Below, one piece after another: positions 9,201 to 64,000 of a stretch of 64,000 bases of DNA (position 1 is its first letter; every line of letters begins with the position of its first letter). This DNA is from Macrostomum lignano (Eukaryota). A program made the translations under genes and the position numbers. The notes beneath the pieces are model-generated. The model saw nothing but the letters and a program-made list of their open reading frames with translations. It was not told the origin of the DNA and ran no database searches. The stretch is taken from contig NIVC01002323.1 of the NCBI GenBank assembly GCA_002269645.1, forward strand, positions 119,779 through 183,778, written 5' to 3'.

Positions 9201-10113
9201 GATATTATATAGTTTTTGGTAGACAAAAATGAGAAGAATTAATAATTAATGATTGATATAGAGAGTATTTGCGCAGTTGAAGCTCTGCGCATTTCTGATC
9301 TGATTTTCAGAATTATAAATATATGTGCACTCCAACTATATTTAGTGTGCAGCATAAAGCTTTCATTCTAGCGATATGCTAACACCAGTTTACACACAAT
9401 ATCTTCATTTGTAATTTGTACTTCGATAAATCAATATAATAAACGAAATAATATGCTAGTGATACTACTAACAATTCATAAGTGAATATTTGCTTAATCA
9501 ATTTTTGTCTTTGTCAGATGGCACCTACGATCAGCTGACCGATTCGGAGTCGGAAATAACCTACAAGTGTTTTGTAGTGAATCAGGATTCCAGAGATATG
9601 AGAGCGGTGAGTCACCTTTATAAATTTATTCATTCACACACACATTGAATTTGTCTGCCTATGGGCTCTGCCCTACGTGTGTAAATGTTTGTGCGCTAGT
9701 AAGCTGGATACAGGAGTTACGTAATCAATCAAAATCCTCGTCAAATCGGATTTATTGTTATGTTGCGTAACTCTCAACTGTTAATTTAATATCTTGGTAT
9801 GTTCGAAGTAGAGAGGGTGTTCATGCTGTTTGTCTGAGGCCTTAACTAAGCCAAAATACTGCCTTTCGCTGGTGTTAAGATCTAGATGTGCAATCAGTGC
9901 GCTTCAAGATATTGCTGTAGTCTGTAGTCTTTTGGATTGTTATATGGATGAATTAGTTGTAGTCAGAGGTGGGTGTTTAGATAGACAGACAGATATACAG
10001 ATAGGTAGATAGATAGACAGATAGGTAGGTAGATAGATAGATAAATAGATATATAGATAGACAGATAGATAAATAGATAGGTAGATAGATAGATAGATAG
10101 ATAAATAGATAGG

Positions 10114-10169
<56 letters not shown>

Positions 10170-13100
10170 AAGATAGATAGATAGATAGATAGACAGATAG
10201 ATATTCATAGATTGATAGATAAATATGCAGTTAGTTAAACCTATTGATATATAAACATCAGGACGGACTTTCGCACTATGCGGATACTTACGCTATCTAA
10301 GATAAGCTTTCAGGCATTTATAATTAAAGTTAATTAGAGTTTCTAGTCAATTGTAGAATATTTTGTTCTTAATTTACCAGGAGCTCCGCAAGCTGAAGTT
10401 CTGGTTCGTGTCCACCATTCATAAGAAGGTCACCAGCTTCCTAGTGCAGACGTCGTTCATGTTCTTTAACGACCTGATCACGCCGGGTCACGTGCCCAAG
10501 GACTACGCCAGTTTCATCAAGCGAGTCATGCGCCTGATGCTGCTGGACAAGTATCAGAATATTTCTCGAATCCATCTGGATGTTGTGCCGCTGGACATCA
10601 AGGAAGCCGGCATTGACGGCTTGGAAGGTAAACTTAATACTTGTGTGTGCAGATTCCTATTCAGCCTGCTTTTTAATTACAAATAAACGCACATCATCTA
10701 CTCTTAGTAGAACTACTGGCATTTGCATATTAGTATTCAATTTGTCCATAATCGCGCAATATCGACTGATTTCAGATGTGAATGGTGTTGGTGGTAAGAA
10801 CGGAGATTTTTTAGATATTGATTACTCACTGTTTTCTAGTCATTTCATATATTTTGTTGTTATATTGCATGTAGTTAGTATGTCGTTTTTATTCCATATA
10901 AATTGGTTATTTTTTACCTTTAAATTTGAGTCTTATTTACGATAAGCACCAGCTGAATATGGCGTCCCAAACGCACAATGCAAGTTTTTTAAGTAGTGAC
11001 TGGTTAATTTTTGTTGTGTTTTTTATGTAAAATTTTTTTTATATTGATAGTCACAGGCAATCAGAACGCCTCCCATCGACTCTTTATTCATTAGCGTTTT
11101 TTCTTTCGCTGTATATGTCTTAGACACTACTTGTAGTATCGGTGACGGGGAATAATAGTTAGCTTTGTCTAGATTTATTAGATATTAAATCGATTTTAAT
11201 TACTGAAAAATCATGTCTGCAATCATTTCTAGATCGAGACGATCGGCCTGTTGAAGTGCGCGTCCAAGAGCAAGTGATGCGCACTATTGAAGAGGCTTAT
11301 CCTAATGTGCTTACTACTGAAGAGTTGTCAAAGTGAGTAGTGTGTTGAGTTTTTAATCTTATTATTGACACAGATTGCTTTGTAAAATCTTGTAAACTTT
11401 TTAGTTGGTAAACATTCAACTTGGTACTAGAGTTGTTACTATGATATATTCAATTTTTCATTGATATTTGGTTGCTAGGGTAGTTTATTTCAGCCTTATC
11501 TGTTGCTAGGGTAGTTTATTCAACCTTTTCTGGTTGCTAGGGTAGTTTATTTTAATCTTTACTGGTTGCTAGGGTAGTTTATTTTAACCTTTACTGGTTG
11601 CTAGGGTAGTTTATTTTAACCTTTACTGGTTGCTAGGGTAGTTTATTTCAACCTTATCTAGTTTCTAGGGTAGTTTTTTGCAACCTTTTCTGGTTGCTAG
11701 GGTAGTTTGTTTCAACCTTTTCTGGTTGCTAGGGTAATGTTATTTCAACATTTAATGTTTACCTGGTTGCTAGGTTAAATTATTTCAATATTCGTCTGGT
11801 TGCTAGGGTATTTATTTCAATATTCATCTGGTTGCTAGGGTAATTTATTTCAACATCATTCGGTTGCTAGGGCCAAATAAGTTGTTAAGTCAGCAGGTGT
11901 TAATACCATACGAATAATCCGCACTGCAGGGTGGTCCAACAGGACGAGAAGCTGGTGCTGCGCATCCTAGACCAGCTGCTAACCGAAGGCAGGCTTCATC
12001 GTGTCGCCATGGAGGGCCGCAATCGAGGCAAGTTCGCCTACGTGCTGCAGGTGCAAACGGGACAAGACGATACCAACGCGGAACTGGGCATGGGCAAAGT
12101 TGAAGAAATTAACGAAGGAAATATGGACGTGATCACTAAGATGAAGGAGAAACCCACCGTGGCCATCATCACTAATCTGATGTGCGAGAAACGCGCTGTA
12201 GACGCCGTTATGCAAGACAAAACCACCTACGTTCGCTACGAGACTAAAGGCGGTGACTCTCACGTGTACACCATCGGCTATATTGGCGCGCACAAGTGCG
12301 TGAGCACTAAACTGCCAGCCGTTGGTCGCGACCGGCGAGCCAAGATTGCTAGCGGCAATACTACTACTAGACTGTTGGGCACCTTCCAGGTGAGCTCAAC
12401 GGGATCAGCGTGTCTGACTCTCCCGCCGCATTGGGCCCCTGGTTCGATTCACCACATTTACCTGTGTGAGCGTGTGTATAAAATTGTGCTCAGGAGACAA
12501 CACAATGGGCAGAATTGTCTCAGCGTTGGTTGTGGGACGGTGTCGCTGAAGGTCCCACAGCCTTCCTGCCACTGCTTATCACTTATTCAGATGAGCTATA
12601 ATGCTAATTTGTATGAATTCTTGCCGCGTATTTTTCAGTCAAATGGGATCCTACTTTAAAATTCTAAATCCCAATCTTGCGCTCGTAGTGAAGTTCCGAC
12701 GTTAGTAAGATTCCGACACTAGTAAGATTCGATCCCACATTAGTAAGATTCCCACATTAGTAAGATTCCGACATTAGTAAGATTCCGACACTAGTAAGAT
12801 TCCGACACTAGTAAGATTCCGACACTAGTAAGATTCCCACATTAGTAAGATTCCGACATTAGTAAGATTCCGACACTAGTAAGATTCCGACACTAGTAAG
12901 ATTCCGACGTTCGTAAGATTCCGACATTAGTAAGATTCCGACATTAGTAAGATTCCGACACTAGTAAGATTCCGACACTAGTAAGATTCCGACGTTCGTA
13001 AGATTCCGACACTAGTAAGATTCCGTCATTATTGAAATTCCGACATCGCTAAAATGCAGACTAATCGCTAAAAGCTATTACATCTAACCCAACATATCGG

Positions 13101-16100
13101 AACGGGAAAGCCCTAGCAAGGCTAACTAAACTCTTCATTATCGAACCAACAATAACTTGCTCAGGACATCGAGCACGTTCTGCTTGTCGGCGTATGCGGC
13201 TCCGTGTGCAATCTGAGCGACTTGGCTCAGAGTAGCCGCTTAGGCGACATCATCGTAGCCTCGCCAAGCCCCAAGCAGGACAGCGCCTACGTCTACTGCG
13301 ACAGCGTTGACGAGGACGACTCCGGCCAGCTGAAATTCAGTCTCAAGCAGTGGATTGTGCCCGATGCTAAACTGCCGCAGTTGGCCGCTAATTTAGTGTC
13401 CGCCTATGGGCCCAGCTTTGAACAGGTGAGCTGCTCCTGTGTGTCCACAGTGTACATCATTTGTGTCTTTGGTTCGGACAGTCCCGTCCATATAGTGTAC
13501 ATCATTTGTGTCTTTGGTTCGGACAGTCCCGTCCATATAGCGTACATCATTTGTGTCTTTGGTTCGGACAGTCCCGTCCATATAGCGTACATCATTTGTG
13601 TCTTTGGTTCGGACAGTCCCGTCCATATAGCGTACATCATTTGTGTCTTTGGTTCGGACAGTCCTATCCATACAGTTTACAACATTTGTGTCTTTAGTTC
13701 GGACATTCCCGTCCATATAGTGTACATCATTTGTGTCTTTGATTCGGACAGTCCCGTCCGTAGTATATATAGTGTCCGCGGACACTCCCGTCCATGAAAC
13801 CGGACACTCACTGTATTTAATCACCAACCCCGTCAGGCGCCATGGACGCAGCTAAGCGCCGAGGTGGCCAATCAGCTGGCCGACTTTGCCAAGCCCGAGG
13901 GCGTGGAAGACAAAGTGCAAATGCAGCTGGGCGACGGTCAGATGATTGAGATGGCGCCGCCAACTCTGGACCGAAGCGGCGACCTGCCAGTTGTTCGAAT
14001 GGGACCGCTGGGCAGCGGCAAACCCATTGTCTCTGACGCCTACCTGAGATCCGAATTCGCCACTGAAAAGGGACTTATTGGCTATGATACGGAGTTTGAT
14101 CAGGTGAGTTCTGTGCTGATTCAATTATGCCAAGTTTTTGGGGTTCTCAATTTTAGTGCGGCTTCTGCAGTGCTGAGTTTGGGTGTCCGATTTTGAGTTT
14201 TTTTGTTCAGGTGCCGAGTCTGGCTTTTTGGGTCTATAGTACTGACTCTGTGTTGCTGAGTCTACTGTGCTGAGTCTGAGTTGCTGTATCTAGGGTGCTG
14301 AGTCTGAGGTGTTGAGTTTATGGTGCTGAGTCTGAGGTGTTGCTGAGGTGTGCTGAGGTGCTGAGGTGTTGAGTTTATGGTGCTGAGTCTAGGATACTAA
14401 GTCGATGGTGCTGAGTCTATGATATAGAGTCTGAGTTGGTAAGTCTAATGAGCTGTGTCCATGGTGCTGATTCTATGGTGCTGATTCTATGATGCTGAGT
14501 CTGAGTTGCTGAGTCTAATGAGATGTGTCTATGGTGCTGATTCTATGATGCTGAGTCTGAGTTGCTGAGTCTGAGTTGCTGGGTCTGAGTTGCTGGGTCT
14601 AATGTGCTGTGTCTATGGTGCTGATTCTATGATGCTGAGTCTGAGTTGCTGAGTCTAATGAGATGTGTCTATGGTGCTGATTCTATGATGCTGAGTCTGA
14701 GTTGCTGAGTCTAATGAGATGTGTCTATGGTGCTGATTCTATGATGCTGAGTCTGAGTTGCTGAGTCTGAGTTGCTGGGTCTAATGTGCTGTGTCTATGG
14801 TGCTGATTCTATGATGCTGAGTCTGAGTTGCTGAGTCTAATGAGATGTGTCTATGGTGCTGATTCTATGATGCTGAGTCTGAGTTGCTGAGTCTAATGAG
14901 ATGTGTCTATGGTGCTGATTCTATGATGCTGAGTCTGAGTTGCTGAGTCTGAGTTGCTGGGTCTAATGTGCTGTGTCTATGGTGCTGATTCTATGATGCT
15001 GAGTCTGAGTTGCTGAGTCTAATGAGATGTGTCTATGGTGCTGATTCTATGATGCTGAGTCTGAGTTGCTGAGTCTGAGTTGCTGGGTCTGAGTTGCTGG
15101 GTCTAATGTGCTGTGTCTATGGTGCTGATTCTATGATGCTGAGTCTGAGTTGCTGAGTCTGAGTTGCTGAGTCTGAGTTGCTGGGTCTAATGTGCTGTGT
15201 CTATGGTGCTGATTCTATGATGCTGAGTCTGAGTTGCTGGGTCTAATGTGCTGTGTCTATGGTGCTGATTCTATGATGCTGAGTCTGAGTTGCTGAGTCT
15301 AATGAGATGTGTCTATGGTGCTGATTCTATGATGCTGAGTCTGAGTTGCTGAGTCTAATGAGCTGTGTCTATGGTGCTGATTCTATGATGCTGAGTCTGA
15401 GTTGCTGAGTCTAATGAGCTGTGTCTATGGTGCTGATTCTATGATGCTGAGTCTGAGTTGCTGAGTCTAATGAGCTGTGTCTATGGTGCTGATTCTATGA
15501 TGCTGAGTCTGAGTTGCTGGGTCTAATGAGATGTGTCTATGGTGCTGATTCTATGATGCTGAGTCTGAGTTGCTGGGTCTAATGAGATGTGTCTATGGTG
15601 CTGATTCTATGATGCTGAGTCTGAGTTGCTGAGTCTAATGAGCTGTGTCTATGGTGCTGATTCTATGATGCTGAGTCTGAGTTGCTGAGTCTAATGAGCT
15701 GTGTCTATGGTGCTGATTCTATGATGCTGAGTCTGAGTTGCTGGGTCTAATGTGCTGTGTCTATGGTGCTGATTCTATGATGCTGAGTCTGAGTTGCTGG
15801 GTCTAATGAGCTGTGTCTATGGTGCTGATTCTATGATGCTGAGTCTGAGTTGCTGAGTCTAATGAGATGTGTCTATGGTGCTGATTCTATGATGCTGAGT
15901 CTGAGTTGCTGAGTCTGAGTTGCTGAGTCTAATGAGCTGTGTCTATGGTGCTGATTCTATGATGCTGAGTCTGAGTTGCTGAGTCTAATGAGCTGTGTCT
16001 ATGGTGCTGATTCTATGATGCTGAGTCTGAGTTGCTGGGTCTAATGAGCTGTGTCTATGGTGCTGATTCTATGATGCTGAGTCTGAGTTGCTGGGTCTAA

Positions 16101-23830: not shown

Positions 23831-28105
<4,275 letters not shown>

Positions 28106-29922: not shown

Positions 29923-32900
29923 ATGCCTGCCAATTGGAATGCGGTTCTACCAACTTGTCTAGCGATTACAATTTGTCTATTTTGCGCTTGCAACAAGTCT
30001 GGCTTCGCTTTAAAGTTGGACAACAATTTCTACGACCTCTTCAGCCTGTCGCGCATTTACGACCGCGTGAAATATGGTGATATTGCTCAGCTACACAAGG
30101 CCTATCAGGAATACCATATCAATGAGAACACGGCCCGGTTATTGTTCACTTTGGCTAGAGCTTTCACAACTACTAAAATTATGAGTGAAAAGGATTTTAT
30201 ACTGGCGTCTTACATAAGCTCCTCGCTTGATCCCAGCGTGTGCGACGACTACACCCGGTTTAGTAAGCATCAGCAGATCGATGTGCAATGCCACTTCCAA
30301 GCCTTTGTGGTAAGGGGGCCATGTAAATTTGCATGACAATTTTCATTGATTTTTATAATAGGGGCCAAATCAGAAGCAAGGACAACTAAAGCATCGTATA
30401 TATAGGACGCGACACTCGAAATCTATCGAAAATGTTTAGAAAGTCACTTTTCGCCAAAAAATACACTCGAAGATAGGAAGTTTTCATTTTTTCAGCACAA
30501 AAAATTGTTATTGCTTTCGATAGGAGGCAGACCCAATGTTCATCTTTTGATATGATGTGCTGATACAAAATATCTGAATGTTGCAATTCAAAAATTAAAA
30601 TAACGTGCTTTCCGTTACTACTCTACTTAAAATAGAAATGTAGGAAAAAAACGCCTAAAATAATGAAAACAACGCAAATGTAACACTATAAATTATCACG
30701 AAGTCATCAAATCACAAAATCATACGAAAGTAAAACTTCATATTGAAAAAACCACCCTAAAAAATTCGGCAGACATGCGTGGAAGGCGTGCTCCAGAGAC
30801 CAGCCGACTGTCTAATGGCCAGCGAAGCCGATCGAGGCGACTGTCCTCAGGCGAAGCTGTGCAACTCTGCCTACAATCACGCAGCCGAAGGAGGCAAGGA
30901 AACTCGAGCCTGGCTGCAGCTGTGGGCCGAGGAGACAATGCAGGACCTCGTTAATTATCGGAACAACACACCGACAGAGATCGCCGCCATGCTGCGGAAG
31001 AGCTGCCTGCACGATTCTCAGTTCCTATCCGCCATCTACAATCTGGCCCTGTGCTCGGAGATTTCTAGGCAAGCCTCGCTGATGCATCCGAGGATAGTGC
31101 ACCCGCTAGCTGAGATCTACTGCCCGGATCCCTGCCTGCGAAGGCCATGCGCTTCCAGGGCGCTGCGGCATCAGCTAATTAACACAGAGTGCTTATCACT
31201 GTCCACTCGATGGGAGAGTAGGCACGCCATCGCGCACATGTGGGATGACTTGCAACTGCAGCTACAGCACGATATGCCACCGCAGTACACGTGAGTGCGA
31301 TAACACGGTTTACACTTGTTGACCTTGAAAGTCTCTTATAAAAGTATCTGGTGACCTTCAAGTAACATTGAAACTCTCTTATCAACGAATCATGCGACCT
31401 TGAAATTCTCTTGTCAGGTATCTTGTGACCTTGAAGCCCTTTTATCAAAGAATCATATGACCTTGAAGTTCTCTTATCAAAGAATCATGCGACCTTGAAA
31501 TTCTCTTGTCAGGTATCTTGTGACCTTGAAACCCTTTTATCAAAGTATCTTGCGACCTTGAATCTCTCCTATAAATGTTATTTAGAGAACTTGAAACTCT
31601 TGTGACCTTAAAATTATCTTATAAATGTATCTTGTGACCTACATGTAGCTTGAATTACTTGTATAAAAGTATCTTGGTACCTTGAAATTAAATCTCACCT
31701 GAAAGATTTGTACTACCCTTAAGAAATCATGTATTCTAGGTAAATCTTACAAAACTGACGCACAGTACCTGCGCCATTCCCAGATGCGCTTGCCGCTACG
31801 GCAGTTGGTCGCCAGTCAAGCAGGCTTGCGAACATGTTTCCGGAGGCGACTTTCGCACCTGCTCGCCAACCCTGGCCAACCGGTATTTCCCCTGCGACTC
31901 TGTCGGAACTGTGGCTTGCTACGAGAACAGCGAATCAGAGGAGATCCCATTCATCTGCCGCTGTCGCCCAGGCTTCGTTGGCGTGTTTTGTCACGAGAAA
32001 GTCAACTCCTGTCTGAACTTGGCTGTGGACGTCAAACTGCATGGTAAATATTGAATCTATTGATAGTTTGCATAAATAAAACTATTGACCAGTGTTTGTT
32101 TGGAAGTGGTCTGAACTTTTTTTAAAAAACATGTTGGTTCAAGGGGCTTAAACATCAGGGGCTTTAGCAGCAGGGGCTTTAGCAGCAAGGGCTTTAGCAG
32201 CAGGGGCTTTAGCAGCAGGGGCTTTAGCAGCAGGGGCTTTAGCAGCAGAGGCTTTAGCACCAGGGGCTTTAGCCATCTCATTTTTTCCAGCCGAATTCGC
32301 TCTTCTCCATGTCGCCCCTGGCTGCAATCCCCTGTCCTTTAAGCCAAAGTATGCAGAGCCAGATGTGAAAAAACTCAATCCGCAGGCACAACCCGTCGCA
32401 TGTCGGGCAACCGGATGTGCAACGTGAATCACGGAGGCGAGCCCTTAGCCAACTGGAACTCGCCCGTAAACACCTGCCAACCCGATCCGAAATCGCACGG
32501 CGGCTATAATTGCACCTGCGTTTCGCCATTCTACCGGCTGATTTACCTGGAGACGGACAATTGCCTGGGCGCTCGTCGGGCCTGCGACGCTGAGCTGTGC
32601 ATCAACGGCGAGTGCGTCTCAACGCCCGACAAGATGACCGCCAGCTCGTGCCGCTGCAGCCCCGGCTGGGCCGGCTCGCTATGCGACGTCCAGTTGGAGG
32701 ACTGGAGCGTCTGGACCGGCTGCCGGCCCGTCTGCGGCGTCAACCGGACTCGACAGCGCCGGAGGCGCGGCGATAGGCGCCAATACGACCGAGTGTACGT
32801 GGAGACGGAGCTCTGCCCGAGCAGGTGGGCGCTTTCATATTTTTTTTACTAAATCTTGGTGTTATACACTGGCTGACAAGCAGCCTCGTTGCAGCCAGCT

Positions 32901-33199
32901 TACAACAGGAGTCACAGGGACCTCTAGCCAGAGCCTCTGTAGCTGGCGCTCCCTCTGTAAGCTAGAAACGGTACGTCTTTTCACTATCAGAAGGGTTGGC
33001 GTGCAAACTGCCGAATTTCAGATCCTGCTACGCCGACACGAACGATCTGGAGTACTCGGCCTACCAGACGCTGACCCACGCCACTAGCGCCGATGCTGCC
33101 GCCCTCACGGGCTGCGCACTGCTGGCTTTGCTCAGCTTTGTTGGCTTGCGATTCTGGCAGCCTCGCTTTGCTGCCGTTGAGGGACAGCCAGCAAGCTGA
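29923..33199 (+). CDS. About 629-aa secreted/membrane-anchored protein: signal peptide, uncharacterised Cys-containing N-terminal region, 3-4 EGF-like repeats, TSP1-like module, C-terminal hydrophobic anchor
   Basis: Exons 29923-30309, 30773-31290, 31766-32043, 32386-32824, 32895-32956, 32994-33199 (1890 nt). EGF motifs CRCRPGFVGVFC and CINGECV...CRCSPGWAGSLC. TSP1-like WSVWTGCRPVCG...RQRRR. The last junction needs the distal AG of a CAGAAG acceptor, or else a 1-nt indel, so the 3' model is less certain. Confidence 0.8.
31310..31700 (+). repeat. Degenerate about 30-bp minisatellite (GACCTTGAAA..CTCTT) in an EGF-gene intron
   Basis: About 11 imperfect copies. Confidence 0.8.
32148..32272 (+). 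repeat. 15-bp minisatellite (CAGGGGCTTTAGCAG)
   Basis: About 8 copies; reverse complement of units at 37880-38095. Confidence 0.92.
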
Positions 33200-33764
33200 T
33201 GTTTGCAACGGGGTTTCAAACGTCTTCGTCTTCAAGTTCATGAAATTGACTAATGGAACCAGCAAATTGGTTTGTCAATTAGTAACTTGTATATTAGTTG
33301 CTACAAATTTGTTTAAATACTGAACAGTCTATTGAAGTCCTCCTTGCGTTGTAAGTTGTCTTATAAACATTTTATTGTTAGTCATAAGTTTATGATCACA
33401 CGAGTTCTGTTAATATTTAGACAGGTTTTCAATCAACATTTCGGATTCATCAATTTAATACAACCGTGAAAAACTCGAAAAAACAGAGAAAATGGTGACT
33501 TCCTTTGCTTTCATCTTTTTGTTTGCTTTTCTCGAACTTCGTAACTGCATTTGACCTGATGGATTCAATCTGAATAAGTCACTGATTTTTTCTGCTTATT
33601 TTTGTTAAATGTTTACTTCAGCAAAAATCAGAGAGATCGGCAGCCAAGGTACTTTGATTATACATACCTATTTTATTTGCTTGCAGTGGGAGCTCCTTTT
33701 GTTGTAGCAGTGTCAGTTAATTGTTTGCAACCGCAGAAACTATAATAAAAATATGCCACCTGCA

Positions 33765-34434: not shown

Positions 34435-37400
34435 TTACCAAGGCACAAACATTGCCACAATCAATAACATTACAGACGCAGCAAGGCTGCACTTGTTTCG
34501 GCTGCAACTGCTATTTCGATCGTCGTCGAGATTAACGTCGACAACATCGATTCCCAGATGTTGCAGCTCAGTCGTGGTTGGCACCGCTGTTGGATTGTCC
34601 AATTCAATCACGTTAGACGCTGGGCCGGTAACGTTGGCAGCGGAAATCGCCGTCACAGCTAGGAAGGTTTGGCTTAAACCGAGCGAACTAACTTGACTGA
34701 AGATGTTTGCAGATGCTTTTGGCGTTCTAAGTAGCTCCTGTGCGATTGAAAAGTTATTACCTAGCAACTGGCCAGGCGATGCAGCGAAACGAACCGAGTA
34801 AGCTGGTACGTCTGTTGGTTGAATTGAGACGAACAATTTCTAGTCGAATATAACGAGTTACAAATTGTCGACAATAGAAAAACAAATACTGTTTTAATGA
34901 CCACAACGATTCGTTGAAGAAAATCGAGTGTTCAAATTTGGGCCAAGAATAACAAAATTCCTGTCTCTCTAAATTTAATGGGAAACGAAACTTCTAATGG
35001 TAAACTTTTAAGACCTTGCAATTATTATTTCTTCTAAAACTATTCGGGTTTGGTTTTAGTTGCGACTTTTTTTACTGTTGTTGTTTTATTATTTTTATTT
35101 GAAATTTGCGATTATCCTAGAAGTATAGCTGGCAATATTGAAACTAGTGATGACATGACATGACATACTTGGACCGTCCGATAGTCCTGATGGATCTTTA
35201 ACTGCCGTCCAGGATAGAAGCACAGTTCTGGTCGAGACGCTAACGCTCAATCTGAGGTCCGTGATCCGAACAGGGGCTGTCAGGCTCTTTTCAAAGCTCG
35301 GATTGCTATTAGCAACCGTCAGTTTGCCGGCTGAAGCAACCCGACTGAGCGGTGAGGTGCAAATTATTGAAACAGAATAGTCGCGAGAGATACTCACAGC
35401 GTCGGCTGGTATGTAACCGGAGTAAGTGCCGTCGTTTGCCTTCAGATCGGCTCCTGAATTGGTGTTAAAAGGTGACTGATTTTAGTTTATTCGTTTAGAA
35501 AGCAAGGTCACAGGATAATTTTCCTCATTTTCAAGTTGGTATTTCAATATTCTATCATCAAGCTCATCAGATAAATATAGCCCTCAAGAAAAACAAGACC
35601 TAGCAAAGTTTTCTAGCTTATATAGGAAATTTTCGCCCCAGTCGCAACCTACCGGCCCCATTGTCTGTCAGATTAAATCGAGCCACTCGACCTTCGTTTG
35701 ACCTGACAGCGGCAAACAGCCGAGCCCCGACAACCGGAGAGTAGCCTCGCATCAAGCGGGCATAAACGCCTATCAGTGTGCTCTCCGTCACTGCCTGCAC
35801 CCAGTCTGGGATGACGTCACCGATGAGCGTAGTGGGCAGATCCGCAGTTTCAGTAGCGGATCCTGCAGGCGCTGGCCTCCCAGTAACGACAACCAGACCG
35901 CTCCTGACGGTTTCAGCTTGCCTTCTGAATCGTCGGTAAACCCGGCGTCGCTGCCAGACCGCACTCGACGTAGCCGCCAGGTTTTCCAGCGACCAACGGC
36001 CAATCTAATTTTCACAATTGAAGCATTATACGAAGAAACTACTTCCTTCATACGACTTTCTGTCAGGCGGTACATGTAGTTCATAGAGGACAGACAACTC
36101 ACCACAATATCCTTGTCAGGAATCCGCACAGACACGGTGCCTGAAGCTGTGTCCACCGTGCAGGCACTGTTATCGCCAGCTCCGCTGCAGTTGAAGGACT
36201 TGCCGTTCGGCGATCGAACCATCAGCCGCAAGCTGGCCGCCGAGGCGGGCTCGGCGGGGAAGGACAGCACGAAAGCGAGGTCGCGACGAATCGACGAGTC
36301 GACATTGAATTCTAGACGACGTTGAAAATTTGGCCGGACCTCCTGAGTAGCCAGCTGAGGTAGTTTGTTAGGGGTATTGCGTATTATTAATATGTTCTCT
36401 GAAAGGCGTCCAGAAGTGTTCACACTATATCTGTGACTTGGAGGATGGCTCTTATGGGCGTGAATCATGGTAGAGCAGCTTCGGCTGAATCGGCAGAATT
36501 GCCTCAGCGCTGGCTATGGGACGATGACACCGAAGGTGAAGGCGTATGCCAGGGTGCCCACAGTTTGCTCTGCAACTCACGGTGATGACTCTATCAGCAG
36601 CAGCCACCGCGGATGTGGTGCCGCCCAGCGACAGCCGCAGTCCCGCAGCCGCCAGCCCACCAGCGGCGTCGGCGCCGGCCGCTTCGCCAAAAAACTGACG
36701 ACCTCCGGTGACATCGGCCAGACGCGACATCCGAGTGTCAGCTTGGTCGCCGTAGCGAACGGACACGACCTCCAGGCTGCTGGCAGCCAGTGCATTAATC
36801 GTCGCATCTAAAACGCCATCGCAGCCTTCTTCGCCGTCTGACAGGAGAATAATTTGTCCCGTAGAGCGACGATTCGGACGATGCGGATTCACGCCTAGCA
36901 GCTGGTTGGCGAGGGGTTTTGTTTCTGGCATGGAGTCAACAGGTGATAAATCATTCGATGACTTCCCATGCATTGATCTGTAGTATACACCATCTACACC
37001 CCTGGTGCTGGCGCCCCTGGTGCTGGCGCCCCTGGTTCTGGCGCTGGTGCTGGCGCCCCTGGTGCTGGCGCCCCTGGTGCTGGCGCCCCTGGTGCTGGCG
37101 CCCCTGGTGCTGGCGCCCCTGGTGCTGGCGCCCCTGGTGCTGGCGCCCCTGGTGCTGGCGCCCCTGGTGCTGGCGCCCCTGGTGCTGGCGCCCCTGGTGC
37201 TGGCGCCCCTGGTGCTGGCGCCCCTGGTGCTGGCGCCCCTGGTGCTGGCGCCCCTGGTGCTGGCGCCCCTGGTGCTGGCGCCCCTGGTGCTGGCGCCCCT
37301 GGTGCTGGCGCCCCTGGTGCTGGCGCCCCTGGTGCTGGCGCCCCTGGTGCTGGCGCCCCTGGTGCTGGCGCCCCTGGTGCTGGCGCCCCTGGTGCTGGCG

Positions 37401-40400
37401 CCCCTGGTGCTGGCGCCCCTGGTGCTGGCGCCCCTGGTGCTGGCGCCCCTGGTGCTGGCGCCCCTGGTGCTGGCGCCCCTGGTGCTGGCGCCCCTGGTGC
37501 TGGCGCCCCTGGTGCTGGCGCCCCTGGTGCTGGCGCCCCTGGTGCTGGCGCCCCTGGTGCTGGCGCCCCTGGTGCTGGCGCCCCTGGTGCTGGCGCCCCT
37601 GGTGCTGGCGCCCCTGGTGCTGGCGCCCCTGGTGCTGGCGCCCCTGGTGCTGGCGCCCCTGGTGCTGGCGCCCCTGGTGCTGGCGCCCCTGGTGCTGGCG
37701 CCCCTGGTGCTGGCGCCCCTGGTGCTGGCGCCCCTGGTGCTGGCGCCCCTGGTGCTGGCGCCCCTGGTGCTGGCGCCCCTGGTGCTGGCGCCCCTGGTGC
37801 TGGCGCCCCTGGTGCTGGCGCCCCTGGTGCTGGCGCCCCTGGTGCTGGCGCCCCTGGTGCTGGCGCCCCTGGTGCTAAACCCCTGGTGCTAAACCTGGTG
37901 CTAAACCCCCTGGTGCTAAACCTGGTGCTAAAGCCCCTGGTGCTAAACCTGGTGCTGGCGCCCCTGGTGCTAAACCTGGTGCTAAAGCTCCTGATGCTTA
38001 AACCAGGTGCTAAAGCCCCTGATGCTTAAGCTAGGTGCTAAAGCCCCTGATGCTAAACCTGGTGCTAAAGCCCCTGGTGCTGGCGCTCCTGTTGCTAAGT
38101 AGCTCGTAGCTTGTACATTACACAACACAGTAATTCTCCCTCACCTGCATAGCCCGCCGAACAGCTCCACCAATGCAGGTGCCACCTTTTGCCTTCAGGC
38201 CAGAGACAGCTTGCGCCAGTCGCTGTCTTGCAGCCGGTGAATCAATCGTTAGAAAATTTACCAGCACAGTGGCTTTTCTGTTGAAGCTGATCAGTGCGCA
38301 CTCTGCTCCATTTTCCAGTACCTCAGTTAGGAACTGGTTGACTGCACCGATCATGTTGCTGATGCGGCTGTCCTGCGTGGTTCGATGGCGAATCTCTGTG
38401 TATTTTGGATTATATTTCGGTAATCTGAGGGTACCTTTAAAAAGGACGAGTCTCGGAGTACCTTAGTGAAGAATCTCGGGAGTATCTCATGGTAAGGAAT
38501 CTCGGGGTTTGGTGACGAATCTCGGGGTATCTTGGTGACGAATCTCGGGAGTACCTTAGTGACGAATCTCGGGGTTTGGTGACGAATCTCGGGGTATCTT
38601 GGTGACGAATCTCGGGAGTACCTTAGTGACGAATCTCGGGAGTATCTCATGGTAACGAATCTCGGGAGTATCTTGGTGACGAATCTCGGGGTATCTTGGT
38701 GACGAATCTCGGGGTATCTTGGTGACGAATCTCGGGAGTATCTTGGTGACGAATCTCGGGAGTATCTTGGTGACGAATCTCGGGAGTATCTTGGTGACGA
38801 ATCTCGGGAGTATCTTGGTGACGAATCTCGGGAGTATCTTGGTGACAAATCTCGGGAGTATCTTGGTGACGAATCTCGGGAGTATCTTGGTGACAAATCT
38901 CGGGAGTATCTTGGTGACGAATCTCGGGAGTATCTTGGTGACAAATCTCGGGAGTATCTTGGTGACAAATCTCGGGGGTATCTTGGTGACAAATCTCGGG
39001 GTATCTTGGTGACAAATCTCGGGGTATCTTGGTGACGAACCTCAGGGTATCTTGGTGGCTAATATCGGGGTATATTGGTGACGAATCTGTGGGTATCTTA
39101 GTGGCGAATCTCGGGGTATCTTGGTGGCGAATCTCGGGGTATCTTTGAAGTGACTCTTGTGGTATCTTTTTAGCTGCATTTATACTCACGCTACCCATGC
39201 TGCCTGAGGTATCCATGACAACCACCACGCGTCGCTTTTCAGACTCGGCTACCAGCTGAAATCGAACCCCAGAATCATCGGCCGGTCCACTTCTCGGGCC
39301 GTCAACATCTCTTTGAAAATCTTCGTGCATCCTGACAATCTCAGCCGCGCTCAGGCCTCCGCAGTGCCTGTTGAGCAGATTGTCGGCGCCTCTGTTGTGC
39401 ACCAGCTTGGGATTCGATACCCGACTGACGGAGTCGCAGAATGCAGCGACCCCGGAGCTGTAGGGCGCGAATAAGAATGATGCAGCGTTTGAGTCCGGCA
39501 GCTCCGTCACCTCTATGCTGCAGTTGTCGCTCAGCTGTTTCGTGTCAGCATTGAAGGCGCAGCGGCGACTGGCACCGTTGCCTGCGGGAACTCGCAGCTC
39601 AGTTTGCAGAGCCGGGCTGCAGGATGCTGCCCTGTACTGCCGAGTGCTAGCAGAAGTGGCCACGGTCTGCAGCAGGCTGCCTAATGGGGCCTCGCTCAAC
39701 AGGCCCCAGCGGTATTGCGAGAAGTACAGGGCGAGGCGCCGGCCCACTGTGAGTAATTGTCAGGGGGGGGCATTGGTTGAGTTCAGGTTGGAAGGTTGTC
39801 AGCTTTGCGATTGGCAAGATAGAGACTCAAGGTGAAAATTCAGAGTCAACGTGGCATGGTTTCAGGGCTCCAGCATCCTCTGCTCTTCCATCCTCCGCTC
39901 CCTCATCCTCCGCTCCTTCATCCTCCGTTCCTTCATCCTCTGCTCTTTCATCCTCTGCTCTTTCATCCTCCGCTCCTTCATCCTCTGCTCCTTCATCCTC
40001 TGCTCTTCATCCTCTGCTCTTTCATCCTCCGCTCCTTCATCCTCTGCTCCATCATCCTCTGCTCTTCCATCCTCCACTCCTTCATCCTCTGCTCCATCAT
40101 CCTCTCTCTGCTCTTCCATCCTCCACTCCCTCATCCTCCACTCCCTCATCCTCCGCTCCCTCATCCTCTGCTCCCTCATCCTCTGCTCCCTCATCCTCCA
40201 CTCCTTCATCCTCTGCTCCCTCATCCTCCACTCCTTCATCCTCTGCTCCCTCATCCTCTGCTCCCTCATCCTCCACTCCTTCATCCTCTGCTCCCTCATC
40301 CTCTGCTCCCTCATCCTCCGCTCCCTCATCCTCTGCTCCCTCATCCTCTGCTCCCTCATCCTCTGCTCCCTCATCCTCTGCTCCCTCATCCTCTGCTCCC

Positions 40401-43400
40401 TCATCCTCTGCTCCCTCATCCTCTGCTCCCTCATCCTCTGCTCCCTCATCCTCTGCTCCCTCATCCTCTGCTCCCTCATCCTCTGCTCCCTCATCCTCTG
40501 CTCCCTCATCCTCTGCTCCCTCATCCTCTGCTCCCTCATCCTCTGCTCCCTCATCCTCTGCTCCCTCATCCTCTGCTCCCTCATCCTCCACTCCCTCATC
40601 CTTCCATCCTTCACTCCTCCGTTCCTTCTCTAGCTTTTGCAAGTAAATAAAATGTATAGCCCCCATTTTAACCTAAGTTACTACTAAAGGTTACTAAACT
40701 TAGTAGTCACACTAGAATTCACTTATCATGACACACTCTACACTCTGCACGCAGTTGCACGAGGGTAAGTTGCACTGGATTTTTCCATTTCTCCTGGCTT
40801 GCGGTGCAGGCAAAGCTATACAAATCTATTTTCCAGACTGGAATGCACGCAATAGCTGCCTCTGTGTGTGTATGCGTGTGCTTGTGTGACTTTGCTTTCG
40901 TCAGCTATCTGTTATCGAAGTTTCCTTTTAAGTGCATGCATAGTATGTCTGCTTTTCTTTTAGCGCGTACGCTCTTATCTGTTTCGTACCAGAACATTTT
41001 GGTTTTACCGTTCTTAAGCGATTAAAACTATTCATGCTTACGATTGATGTGGGCTTAAAGCCACTTAAATTCTGGCCGGTTAAAGATACATGACAATGGC
41101 CACTTAAGTAGTGGTAGACATGCAGTATAGTATTCAAGATTACAATAAGCGGTAACAGAGTCACACCGTACCCTCTAAGTGAGGTGGCAGAGTCACACCA
41201 TGGAATCTGAGAGTCACTCCATAGTATCTGAGTGAGGTGGCAGAGAGTCAACCCATGGAATCTGAGAGTCACACCATGGAATCTGAGAGTCACACCATGG
41301 AATCTGAGAGTCACACCATGGAATCTGAGAGTCACACCATGGAATCTGAGATTCACACCATGAAATCTGAGAGTCACACCATGGAATCTGAGAGTCACAC
41401 CATGGAATCTGAGAGTCACACCATGGAATCTGAGAGTCACACCATAGAATCTGAGTGAGGTGGCAGAGAGTCGCACCATGGAATCTGAGATGCACACCAT
41501 GGAATCTGAGATTCACACCATGGAATCTGAGATGCACACCATGGAATCTGGGAGTCACACCATGAAATCTGAGGGTCACACCATGGAATCGAGAGTCACA
41601 CCATAGAATCTGAGTGAGGTGGCAGAGAGTCGCACCATGGAATCTGAGAGTCACACCATAGAATCCGAGTGAGGTGGCAGAGAGTCACACCATAGAATCT
41701 GAGTGAGGTATCAGGGTGCACCACTTGCCCAGCAATGGTCACTAAGACTCACAATTATCGCTATTCTGAGGCTCCAAACTCTCTGTCGCAAGCAGCACTC
41801 GCAGCGCAGGCCTTGCGCAGCCGGCCACCACAGATTCCGGACCCTCATTCCCCATAGCCAGATCCGGACTGGCAAAGAAATCCGCCCTGTCGCGCCTGTG
41901 CCAGTCGGCTGGAAGCGGGTGCAGCCGGGAGCCTCGGGGGTACACCTGGGCGAATTGGCGACCTAGGCGACCCGACACCAGCACGCTGACGTCCCCGAAG
42001 CTCAGTGGGCGTCCAACTTGTGCAGTGAGAGATGTCAAAACGTCAGAGGCTTGCTCAAAGCCTGCCTGATTTTGGAAAAGGAAAAGTACATGATGATACA
42101 AGTTCAAGCTACACAATGTGGTACTCTCAGCTACACAAAGTGGCACTCTCTTAGCTACACAAAGTGGCACTCTCAGCTACACAAAGTGGCACTCTCAGCT
42201 ACACAAAGTGGCACTCTCAGCTACACAAAGTGGCACTCTCAGCTACACAAAGTGGCACTCTCAGCTACACAAAGTGGCACTCTCAGCTATACAAAGTGGC
42301 ACTCTCTCAGCTACACAAAGTGGCACTCTCAGCTACACAAAGTGGCACTCTCAACTACACAAAGCGGCACTCTTAGCTACACAAAGTGGCACTCTCTCAG
42401 CTACACAAAGTGGCACTCTTAGCTACACAAAGTGGCACTCTCAGCTACACAAAGTGGCACTCTTAGCTACACAAAGTGGCACTCTCAGCTACACAAAGTG
42501 GCACTCTCAGCTACACAAAGCGGCACTCTCAGCTACACAAAGCGGCACTCTCAGCTACACAAAGCGGCACTTTTAGCTACACAAAGTGGCACTCTTAGCT
42601 ACACAAAGTGGCACTCTCAGCTACACAAAGTGGCACTCTCAGCTACACAAAGTGGCACTCTCAGCTACACAAAGCGGCACTCTCAGCTACACAAAGCGGC
42701 ACTCTCAGCTACACAAAGCGGCACTTTCAGCTACACAAAGTGGTACTCTTAGCTACACAAAGTGGCACTATCAGCTACACAAAGTGGCACTTTCAGCTAC
42801 ACAAAGTGGTACTCTTAGCTACACAAAGTGGCACTCTCAGCTACACAAAGTGGCACTCTCAGCTACACAAAGTGGCACTCTTAGCTACACAAAGTGGCAC
42901 TCTCAGCTACACAAAGTGGCACTCTTAGCTACACAAAGTGGCACTCTCAGCTACACAAAGCGGCACTCTCAGCTACACAAAGTGGCACCCTCAGCTACAC
43001 AAAGTGGCACTCTTAGCTACACAAAGTGGCACTCTCAGCTACACAAAGTGGCACTCTCAGCTACACAAAGTGGCACTCTCAGCTACACAAAGTGGCACTC
43101 TCTTAGCTACACAAAGTGGCACTCTTAGCTACACAAAGTGGCACTCTCAGCTACACAAAGTGGCACTCTCAGCTACACAAAGTGGCACTCTTAGCTACAC
43201 AAAGTGGCACTCTTAGCTTCACAAAGTGGCACTCTCAGCTACACAAAGTGGCACTCTCAGCTACACAAAGTGGCACTCTCAGCTACACAAAGCGGCACTC
43301 TCAGCTACACAAAGCGGCACTTTCAGCTACACAAAGTGGTACTCTTAGCTACACAAAGTGGCACTATCAGCTACACAAAGTGGCACTCTCAGCTACACAA

Positions 43401-44109
43401 AGCGGCACTCTCAGCTACACAAAGCGGCACTTTCAGCTACACAAAGTGGTACTCTTAGCTACACAAAGTGGCACTCTCAGCTACACAAAGTGGCACTCTC
43501 AGCTACACAAAGTGGCACTCTTAGCTACACAAAGTGGCACTCTCAGCTACACAAAGTGGCACTCTTAGCTACACAAAGTGGCACTCTCAGCTACACAAAG
43601 CGGCACTCTCAGCTACACAAAGTGGCACCCTCAGCTACACAAAGTGGCACTCTTAGCTACACAAAGTGGCACTCTCAGCTACACAAAGTGGCACTCTCAG
43701 CTACACAAAGTGGCACTCTCAGCTACACAAAGTGGCACTCTCAGATACACAAAGTGGCACTCTTAGCTACACAAAGTGGCACTCTCAGCTACACAAAGTG
43801 GCACTCTCAGCTACACAAAGTGGCACTCTTAGCTACACAAAGTGGCACTCTTAGCTTCACAAAGTGGCACTCTCAGCTTTCAGCCATCTAGAGAGGTGAT
43901 GCTGAGGATACCCGGATGTTCTGCAGCAGCAAGGCGTACTGCTCCACTGACAGTGAAATTGCAGAATCTTCCTCCAAGAACACCAGCAGCTTCCTATAGC
44001 GACCATCAGTCAGGCGAAGCTCGCTCCTTTTGCTAGCAACAAAGTCTGGCTGAGTCGCGATGCAGATTGAGATCAAAGCAGTCAGTGCAATGCTTTGTTT
44101 TAGAAGCAT
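34435..44109 (-). CDS. CLCA: About 960-aa CLCA-like protein (N-terminal zincin-like/Cys-rich, vWA, beta-sheet, FnIII, GPI-like tail), protease motif degenerate
   Basis: Exons (minus strand) 44109-43912, 42065-41753, 39746-39190, 38372-38145, 36901-36581, 36354-36103, 36004-35653, 35453-35169, 34811-34435. Total 2883 nt, phases compatible. CLCA hallmarks: YRWGLLSE, ASFLF...FCD...HN..A.NL.N..C, VVVVMDTSGSM, GGTCIG, IILLSDGEE, NLTDNGAGADLKANDGTYS, ITDL...LSWTA. Confidence 0.92.
36990..38095 (+). repeat. 15-bp minisatellite CCTGGTGCTGGCGCC (about 55-58 near-perfect copies, then degenerate CTAAAGCCCCTG variants) in CLCA intron 4
   Basis: Direct inspection; source of the (WCWRP)n and (LVLAP)n ORFs. 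Confidence 0.98.
38445..39145 (+). repeat. 23-24-bp minisatellite (GACGAATCTCGGGAGTATCTTGGT) in CLCA intron 3
   Basis: About 28 copies. Confidence 0.95.
39868..40612 (+). repeat. 15-bp pyrimidine-rich minisatellite (CTCATCCTCTGCTCC) in CLCA intron 2
   Basis: About 49 copies. Confidence 0.97.
41165..41706 (+). repeat. 21-bp minisatellite (GAGAGTCACACCATGGAATCT) in CLCA intron 2
   Basis: About 23 copies. Confidence 0.95.
42107..43877 (+). repeat. 22-bp minisatellite (AGCTACACAAAGTGGCACTCTC) filling CLCA intron 1
   Basis: About 80 copies. Confidence 0.98.

Positions 44110-45437: not shown

Positions 45438-64000
<18,563 letters not shown>

Follow-up and report, generated by a model that had tools for sequence, protein, structure and literature searches.

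A CLCA-family protein of Macrostomum lignano with a substituted zinc site, a deleted self-cleavage segment and a candidate proprotein convertase site

Background

What remains for a CLCA protein to do, and how might it be matured, once both its protease and the segment cut by that protease have disappeared? The question is raised by BOX15_Mlig006068g1, a gene of the flatworm Macrostomum lignano on the minus strand (44109-34435) of a 64,000-nucleotide stretch of contig NIVC01002323.1 (assembly GCA_002269645.1), hereafter the window, to whose numbering the coordinates below refer. Interest in CLCAs has centred on their self-cleavage and on their regulation of TMEM16 and Orai channels and of mucus, and their protease may or may not do more than mature the protein that carries it. 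A preliminary description of the window had marked a CLCA pseudo-protease at 35300-39744 and proposed that its maturation had passed to a host proprotein convertase. The quoted peptides were correctly placed (GRRLALYFSQYRWGLLSE at 39744-39691 and RRRVYRRFRR, followed by QA, at 35950-35921, both on the minus strand), and its numbering of exons 3, 7 and 8 agrees with the nine-exon model obtained here, although its span covers only part of the gene, namely exons 3-8.

The 960-residue product, referred to below as Mlig006068, is almost certainly a CLCA-family protein of the secretory pathway and non-catalytic. One more inactive invertebrate CLCA would, alone, be unsurprising, given that CLCA pseudo-proteases are already known; what is distinctive, as far as sequence can tell, is that the autocleavage segment has been deleted and that a candidate convertase site lies on a different hairpin. 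A clade that lacks both the enzyme and the substrate segment while keeping the fold, the cysteines and the metal ion-dependent adhesion site (MIDAS) suggests a protease-independent function of the CLCA scaffold, and in this respect the Macrostomum clade described here is a natural experiment on that scaffold without its protease. The M. lignano system is tractable to transgenesis (PMC5730564), so that a direct test is possible.

A CLCA scaffold without its zinc site

Mlig006068 matches the Pfam model CLCA_N (PF08434) over residues 136-318 with 37.2 bits (cut-off 25.6, E=2.9e-9), and the models VWA_2 and VWA with 47.9 and 45.9 bits, respectively; there is no Pfam hit to fn3 in the protein. Its sole solved relative by sequence is the VWA domain of human CLCA1 (6pyo, E=1.7e-11). 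An AlphaFold2 (AF2) model, computed from the 960-residue protein and 78 family sequences, has a mean predicted local distance difference test score (pLDDT) of 89 and a predicted template-modelling score of 0.88, and a fold search of the PDB aligned 6pyo with the VWA domain of this model at a target-normalised template-modelling score of 0.85-0.88. This search matched the model only via VWA, and neither a full-length CLCA nor a zincin surfaced in it; the evidence for a zincin fold at the N-terminus thus comes from Pfam, the alignment and the literature. All-beta domains follow at 538-790 and 800-910 of the model, in the order of the family.

For comparison with the family at large, a HMMER profile of two M. 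lignano paralogues (P0002 and P0003) was run against 1.84 billion representatives and returned 1227 relatives at E<=1e-3. The family alignment comprises 141 retrieved proteins and the window protein, and 117 representatives were alignable over the motif and the loops discussed below; identity between Mlig006068 and the non-Macrostomum members is 20-28%. Across this distance the MIDAS is complete (D349, S351, S353, T421 and D454, at positions that at least 90% of the family conserve), C213, C233, C246, C274 and C299 of the cysteine-rich region occupy nearly invariant columns, and the DNGAGAD and P..ITDL landmarks align with the rest of the family. The assignment to CLCA and the intact DTSGS of the VWA domain, both claimed in the preliminary description, are thus supported by the Pfam scores and by the conserved MIDAS columns.

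The domain order is signal peptide (assigned by eye from the sequence), zincin-like CLCA_N domain, cysteine-rich region, VWA domain with MIDAS, beta-sheet-rich domain, fibronectin type III-like (FnIII-like) domain and hydrophobic tail. Vertebrate CLCA1, CLCA2 and CLCA4 share the family and this order (PMC9007345), and their R-W-G..E, DxSxS/T/D, DNGAGAD and P..ITDL landmarks are also found in Mlig006068. The elements on which the argument turns are encoded as follows (a slash within a sequence marks the bond cut or predicted to be cut):

39691-39729, minus strand: degenerate zincin motif, L177-Y-F-S-Q181-Y-R-W-G-L-L-S188-E189 as against H-E-x-x-H-x-R-W-G-x-F-D-E
39199-39213, minus strand: MIDAS D349-T-S351-G-S353 of the VWA domain, with T421 in exon 4 and D454 in exon 5
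35921-35950, minus strand: polybasic stretch R642-RRVYRRFR-R651, candidate proprotein convertase site RRFRR651/Q652-A
35326-35379, minus strand: short hairpin YSVSIICTSPLSRVASAG, uninterrupted within exon 8, standing in for the self-cleavage segment, which has roughly 45-60 residues in other CLCAs

The CLCA consensus at the zinc site is VHEWxHLRWGVFDEY. Where the vertebrate CLCA1, CLCA2 and CLCA4 carry HExxH...D, Mlig006068 reads LYFSQ...S; the substitutions H>L (L177), catalytic E>Y (Y178) and H>Q (Q181) had been recognized in the preliminary description, and the alignment bears them out and adds a fourth, D>S (S188). The structural R-W-G...E of the helix is retained, and the pseudo-active-site helix itself (residues 171-184) is modelled with a pLDDT of 95-97. 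In the family, the D of the G..DE segment tracks HExxH, being present in 87 of 98 members with an intact motif but in only 7 of 25 with a substituted one (p=4e-9), whereas the E that follows it is found in all 123 of these CLCA representatives, HExxH intact or not, and corresponds to E189 of Mlig006068. This distribution suggests a structural role for the E and, for the D, a link to catalysis or zinc binding. With H, E, H and D all replaced, Mlig006068 cannot, to judge by its sequence, act as a zinc protease of the canonical kind.

An alternative exon that would restore HExxH was also looked for. Six-frame translation of the window holds four HE..H hits, none of which is CLCA-like or lies in the gene, and this possibility, which the preliminary description had put forward as a check, is ruled out.

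The substituted helix does not have the appearance of a motif in decay. The pattern FSQYRWGL.SE.P is invariant among Mlig006068, P0002 and P0003, the latter two of which are 43-45% identical to Mlig006068, and invariance of the substituted motif at this level of identity points to a non-catalytic helix maintained by purifying selection.

A Macrostomum clade that has lost the self-cleavage segment

In vertebrate CLCA1, CLCA2 and CLCA4 a segment of approximately 45 residues holds the autocleavage site (..R/ALY.PG), and in Mlig006068 this segment is gone. Measured between the tyrosine of YSV and the serine of S.G, the interval is 16 residues in Mlig006068, against a family median of approximately 53 and against 61-62 residues in tetrapod-like sequences, which carry ..AAY/IPGW or ..AMY/IDGW within it; these match the published CLCA cleavage sites QNR/ALY and RSR-ALY (PMC9007345). 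The preliminary description had likewise seen a segment far shorter than that of CLCA1, and the alignment confirms a loss of some 45 residues. In the AF2 model the former cleavage region is a tight hairpin between strands 764-774 and 778-789, with a pLDDT of approximately 96.

Rescue of the loop by an extra exon can be dismissed, as the hairpin is encoded contiguously, without interruption, within exon 8.

The dead site and the deletion are both common to a Macrostomum-specific multigene clade, as delimited by the sequences retrieved here. At least five M. lignano paralogue lineages combine a dead motif with the short hairpin. Members of the clade are Mlig006068 itself, Mlig028759 (P0002), Mlig010296 (P0011/P0005), Mlig010915 (P0010), the P0001/P0003 group (P0003 being UniProt A0A1I8GWG2) and fragments such as P0013, and the identity of the paralogues to Mlig006068 ranges from 27 to 45%. 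Where the motif is covered it reads L[YHF]FSQ[YF]RWG, RELSIYLWG or YEFGQFRWG, substituted in every case, and the 16-residue hairpin is present in every member that covers the region. The transcript P0009 (SRR30276804), which groups with these proteins but is counted apart from the M. lignano lineages, also has a dead motif and a 16-residue hairpin, and in the family survey this length is confined to the Macrostomum clade and P0009. No CLCA with an intact motif was seen among the M. lignano members found in the searches made here.

The preliminary description had held that enzyme and substrate loop were lost together. The two losses do co-occur in every Macrostomum member that can be examined; an obligatory coupling between them, or an order in time, does not find support. 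Outside Macrostomum, the dead-motif CLCAs of gar, bowfin, sea urchin, crab and bivalves retain a long loop, which shows that the enzyme can be lost while the loop persists.

A candidate convertase site on another hairpin

The third departure from the vertebrate CLCAs lies 90 residues upstream of the lost segment, where a hairpin of the beta-sheet-rich domain is 18 residues longer in Mlig006068 and polybasic. The preliminary description had called RRRVYRRFRR/QA a strong R-X-X-R site of the furin or proprotein convertase type. The motif is indeed there: R648-F-R-R651/Q-A, with R647 at P5, is the sole R-X-[KR]-R in the 960 residues, and the cluster of seven basic residues within ten exceeds chance, shuffles having equalled it in 89 of 20000 cases. 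The hairpin that bears it (W627..T664) has 38 residues against a median of 20, with 18-21 in almost all of the 117 relatives, and together with that of P0010, also of 38 residues, it is the longest in the family survey. Residues 631-660, between strands 625-631 and 659-666, form the least confident internal segment of the AF2 model (pLDDT 57-77), and the loop is probably flexible.

A canonical basic site occupies the same loop in three lineages of the clade, as RRFRR/QA in Mlig006068, RRIRR/QA in P0011, and RRKR/SA together with RRAR/S in P0010, the loop of which reads GRRKR/SAEE and IRRAR/S. The gene upstream of P0002 has RRIRR/QA in this position as well. The preliminary description had made its proposal depend on conservation of the site in orthologues; among the paralogues the picture is mixed. 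The site recurs in P0011 and P0010 and is missing from P0002, P0003 and P0013, and also from P0009, although P0002 and P0003 share the dead motif and the 16-residue hairpin with Mlig006068.

The arrangement of one pair of paralogues may be recorded here. On contig NIVC01002494.1 (L001:1-3931 and 10001-15269) two pseudo-protease genes stand in tandem, the upstream one of the Mlig010296 type with RRIRR/QA, the downstream one being P0002, without it.

Cryptic in-frame mini-introns of 45-93 nt over the basic stretch were considered and rejected. Their would-be donors (gtcgag, gtgcgg and gtcgct) are poor and a pyrimidine tract is lacking, while the real introns of the gene begin with gtgagt (four times), gtgagg, gtaggt and gtatcc, to which the donor of exon 8 is to be added; the public transcript-derived protein, moreover, retains the polybasic stretch.

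In the DNA, a 9-bp direct repeat, GCGGTCTGG, at 35955-35963 and 35892-35900 (minus strand) brackets 63 nt that include the polybasic stretch. The chance expectation of a 9-bp repeat is approximately 0.04 for a region of this size, and the repeat is possibly the footprint of an insertion or duplication that lengthened the hairpin.

Proposed maturation and alternative explanations

We lean, by no great measure, towards an explanation in which Mlig006068 would serve, without catalysis, as a binding module that depends on metal (through the MIDAS), is tethered to the membrane and is matured in trans. The binding might be directed towards the TMEM16 homologues of M. lignano; TMEM16 (ANO) homologues do exist in this species (PMC3447372). 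A subtilisin/kexin-type proprotein convertase would cut after RRFRR651, within the 18-residue insertion at the tip of the hairpin, and the same maturation in trans would apply to at least two other paralogues. Such a cut should yield an N-terminal fragment of approximately 630 residues after removal of the signal peptide, comprising the pseudo-protease, the cysteine-rich region and the VWA domain, and a tethered C-terminal fragment of approximately 310 residues with the predicted neo-N-terminus QAETVRSGLVVVTGR (QAETVRS). Both flanking strands belong to the same sheet, which may hold the two fragments together after the cut. The convertase step taken by itself, a cut after RRFRR651, we would put at slightly short of an even chance. 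Shedding, which the preliminary description had added to this picture, does not follow from the sequence, and a role in adhesion or in mucus can likewise only be surmised.

The tether assumed in this explanation is the C-terminus, where inspection shows the small residues NSSCS, then a short spacer and lastly 16 hydrophobic residues with which the protein ends. The arrangement ...DDDRNSSCSRNKCS-LAASVMLLIVAMFVPW*, with the asterisk for the stop, resembles by eye a signal for glycosylphosphatidylinositol (GPI) attachment; the hydrophobic end could be such a signal or else a tail anchor. Vertebrate CLCA clusters 2 and 4 have a C-terminal membrane tether, as Mlig006068 would seem to have from inspection of its sequence; P0003 and P0001 possess a transmembrane segment and a cytoplasmic tail, whereas Mlig006068 ends in the bare hydrophobic tail. 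The terminal helix of the model (946-956) is of low confidence.

A furin-type enzyme, as is usual in metazoans, is assumed for M. lignano. An enzyme of the convertase family (peptidase S8) has been documented in the animal (PMC4490696, PMC12435804).

Several observations count against the explanation that we prefer. The documented convertase is the neuronal PC2 (PMC4490696, PMC12435804). The candidate site lies approximately 90 residues upstream of the old cleavage position; a cut in this beta-hairpin of the beta-sheet-rich domain would nick a folded domain and would not obviously release a fragment. Exposure of the polybasic loop was judged from pLDDT and secondary structure, and the GPI signal was read by inspection. 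To the lineages listed above that are without the basic site may be added that an orthologue was not found, a protein search having given four M. lignano proteins only and a search with exon 7 none.

Foremost among the rival explanations is that the polybasic insertion is a basic patch on the surface, for sulfated glycans, mucus or acidic lipids, or else a neutral insertion, and that the protein works uncleaved; we consider this a live possibility, if short of a probable one. Heparin-binding motifs are recognized by a characteristic spacing of basic residues, and QRRRVYRRFRRQ, read from the sequence, fits spacing of this type. Within the clade the hairpin varies between 24 and 38 residues and is variable in sequence, with three paralogue lineages and P0009 devoid of a basic site; a cut inside a folded beta-sandwich, as the AF2 model would have it, is unusual for a maturation site; and the 9-bp repeat around the 63 nt suggests a simple origin by slippage or duplication. 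Against this explanation stand the retention of RR[FI]RR/QA, including P1' and P2', between paralogues that are approximately 30-46% identical, the two textbook furin motifs found at the same place in a third paralogue (P0010), and the general enrichment of basic sites in dead-motif CLCAs that is described below.

It is very unlikely that a CLCA-type metalloprotease still processes the protein, whether through a non-canonical site of its own or through an intact CLCA paralogue acting in trans. An E>Q mutant of mouse CLCA4a is still partly cleaved (PMC9007345), which indicates that cleavage is not always strictly dependent on a protein's own active site, and E189 is retained in Mlig006068. Yet all four of the zinc and catalytic positions are occupied by residues that are not ligands (L, Y, Q and S), the substrate segment is deleted, and every M. 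lignano member found in the searches made here has a substituted motif, with no intact one among them.

It is barely credible that we are dealing with a pseudogene in decay, its dead motif a sign of degeneration, or with an artefact of annotation: all catalytic residues are lost, the M. lignano genome is highly duplicated and repeat-rich (PMC5730564), and P0004 fuses a 93%-identical copy of exons 1-2 to a retroelement open reading frame (ORF), but the ORF of Mlig006068 is intact over 960 codons and nine exons with consensus splice sites, the annotation is derived from transcripts, every domain is confident in the AF2 model, and conservation extends to the cysteines, the MIDAS and the structural part of the motif, with the same substitutions fixed across paralogues at 43-45% identity.

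Dead zinc sites and polybasic sites across phyla

Loss of the zinc site is not peculiar to Macrostomum. In an earlier survey (Lenart 2013, PMC3650047) no more than 72% of CLCA_N members had kept HExxH, and its loss was inferred to have happened independently five times or more. The present sample agrees, with HExxH substituted in 23 of the 117 representatives (20%). The inactive CLCA_N members of that survey (PMC3650047) represent the same phenomenon as Mlig006068, with two differences of detail: the substitution highlighted there for CLCA_N is H>R, whereas Mlig006068 has H>L, E>Y and H>Q, and flatworms receive no mention. Nor is the cleavage segment treated in PMC3650047, where the phrase 'cleavage site' has no occurrence, a check of the text that did not extend to furin. 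As for Macrostomum, the one mention of CLCA found in its literature is of CLCA1/2/4 homologues in a list of ion-channel genes. A literature search combining CLCA with furin yielded nothing relevant.

What the sample adds is an association. R-X-[KR]-R occurs in either of the two cleavage-relevant loops in 9 of the 23 dead-motif representatives and in 10 of the 94 with an intact motif (Fisher odds ratio 5.4, p=0.0025), a figure that is uncorrected for phylogeny and represents approximately six to seven independent lineages, which tempers its support for convertase maturation. Dead motif and polybasic site are combined in two proteins of the sea urchin Lytechinus pictus, XP_054756299 (RNWGY, RRRRRS) and XP_054755671 (RNWAR, RKRR), in the crab Eriocheir sinensis XP_050731210 (LEWAK, RRRR), in the bivalves Pinctada (KAK3102098; HQWGR, RRKR) and Saccostrea (XP_061187626; HHWGH, RRKR), and in the bowfin Amia XP_066577810 (RLWAT, RVRR). 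All of these keep the long loop (40-81 residues) and have the basic site in it; Macrostomum, in contrast, has deleted the loop and bears the site on the other hairpin. The preliminary description had conceded that its case would lose novelty if many invertebrate CLCAs were already so arranged. This holds for dead CLCAs, which are known, and for their polybasic sites, which recur; deletion of the loop with a relocated site is found, in the present sample, in Macrostomum only.

The recurrence of polybasic sites beside dead zincin sites in several phyla is suggestive, and to us it is the most interesting lead to come from this locus. Should a convertase indeed cut at the basic sites, this would show that it is cleavage that counts and that it can be outsourced. 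A general form of this idea, which we regard as doubtful at present, is that cleavage itself is under selection in the CLCA family, that lineages with a dead zincin repeatedly gain convertase sites, and that autoproteolysis in cis is in this manner handed over to processing in trans, a course that Macrostomum may have followed furthest, by discarding the former substrate segment and placing a new convertase site on another hairpin of the beta-sheet-rich domain.

Gene structure and neighbouring sequence

The exon model was assembled by six-frame reading, tblastn with related proteins and inspection of splice sites, and has GT-AG at every junction:

43912-44109, minus strand: exon 1, which opens the reading frame (ATG at 44109) with MLLKQSIALTALISICIATQ..., an N-terminus resembling a signal peptide, and reaches the first part of CLCA_N (GT-AG model, public protein)
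41753-42065, minus strand: exon 2, N-terminal part of the CLCA_N (zincin-like) domain (model, public protein)
39190-39746, minus strand: exon 3, holding the pseudo-active-site helix, the cysteine-rich region and, with DTSGS, the first part of the VWA domain
38145-38372, minus strand: exon 4, VWA domain
36581-36901, minus strand: exon 5, C-terminal part of the VWA domain
36103-36354, minus strand: exon 6, start of the beta-sheet-rich domain
35653-36004, minus strand: exon 7, beta-sheet-rich domain including the extended hairpin W627..T664
35169-35453, minus strand: exon 8, DNGAGAD motif, short hairpin and start of the FnIII-like domain
34435-34811, minus strand: exon 9, FnIII-like domain, disordered linker, C-terminal hydrophobic tail ...NSSCSRNKCSLAASVMLLIVAMFVPW and stop codon

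This model matches the public protein PAA58881.1 (GenBank; UniProt A0A267EBB0), named 'hypothetical protein BOX15_Mlig006068g1', in whose annotation the donor of exon 8 is at 35168 (...SDGPN/VPAY, the slash here marking the exon boundary). The contig NIVC01002323.1 around the gene is 100% identical to positions 46109-32435 of the window, and the annotated gene (L003:2001-11675, L003 being a locus of this contig), equivalent to 44109-34435, has a precomputed PF08434 hit on record. The Mlig_3_7 annotation goes back to RNA-seq, assembled both with genome guidance (StringTie/TACO) and de novo, and took its ORFs from TransDecoder (PMC5730564); transcripts thus support the exons, those coding for the polybasic stretch among them, indirectly, by way of the annotation. 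A literature search for 'Mlig006068' found nothing.

Long minisatellites largely fill each of the first four introns, and this pattern of one array per intron is striking. The arrays lie at 36999-37876 (a 15-mer repeated 59 times), 38445-39145 (24-mer, 30 times), 39874-40602 (15-mer, 48 times), 41243-41669 (21-mer arrays) and 42107-43878 (22-mer, 80 times, 94% match). Such introns are consistent with the M. lignano genome, for which a simple and tandem repeat content of 15% has been reported (PMC5730564).

The 5' end of the gene has a relative elsewhere in the genome. In M. lignano P0004 (UniProt A0A1I8IUE9) a retroelement ORF with DUF1758 and related domains is fused to a copy of exons 1-2 that is approximately 93% identical in the best BLASTP alignment and 78-90% identical per exon by tblastn. 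Matches to P0004 in the window are at 47073-47147, 43906-44049 and 41754-42149, the retroelement part contributing only 25 residues, upstream of exon 1. P0004 represents either a diverged second copy of the gene's 5' end or a merged gene model.

Other features of the window flank the gene on both sides. At approximately 32340-33200, on the plus strand, lies the last part of a neighbouring gene, which has matches of the EGF-like and TSP1-like kinds and an annotated product of 593 residues. A non-long-terminal-repeat retrotransposon of the long interspersed nuclear element type occupies 23834-26809 on the minus strand, its Exo_endo_phos_2, RVT_1 and RNase H domains distributed over three overlapping frames, and the use of three different frames indicates that it is probably frameshifted. 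From approximately 46300 to 64000, on the plus strand, extends a FAT- or protocadherin-like gene with many exons and repeated cadherin domains (one exon matches Pfam Cadherin with E=6e-48), which continues past the end of the window.

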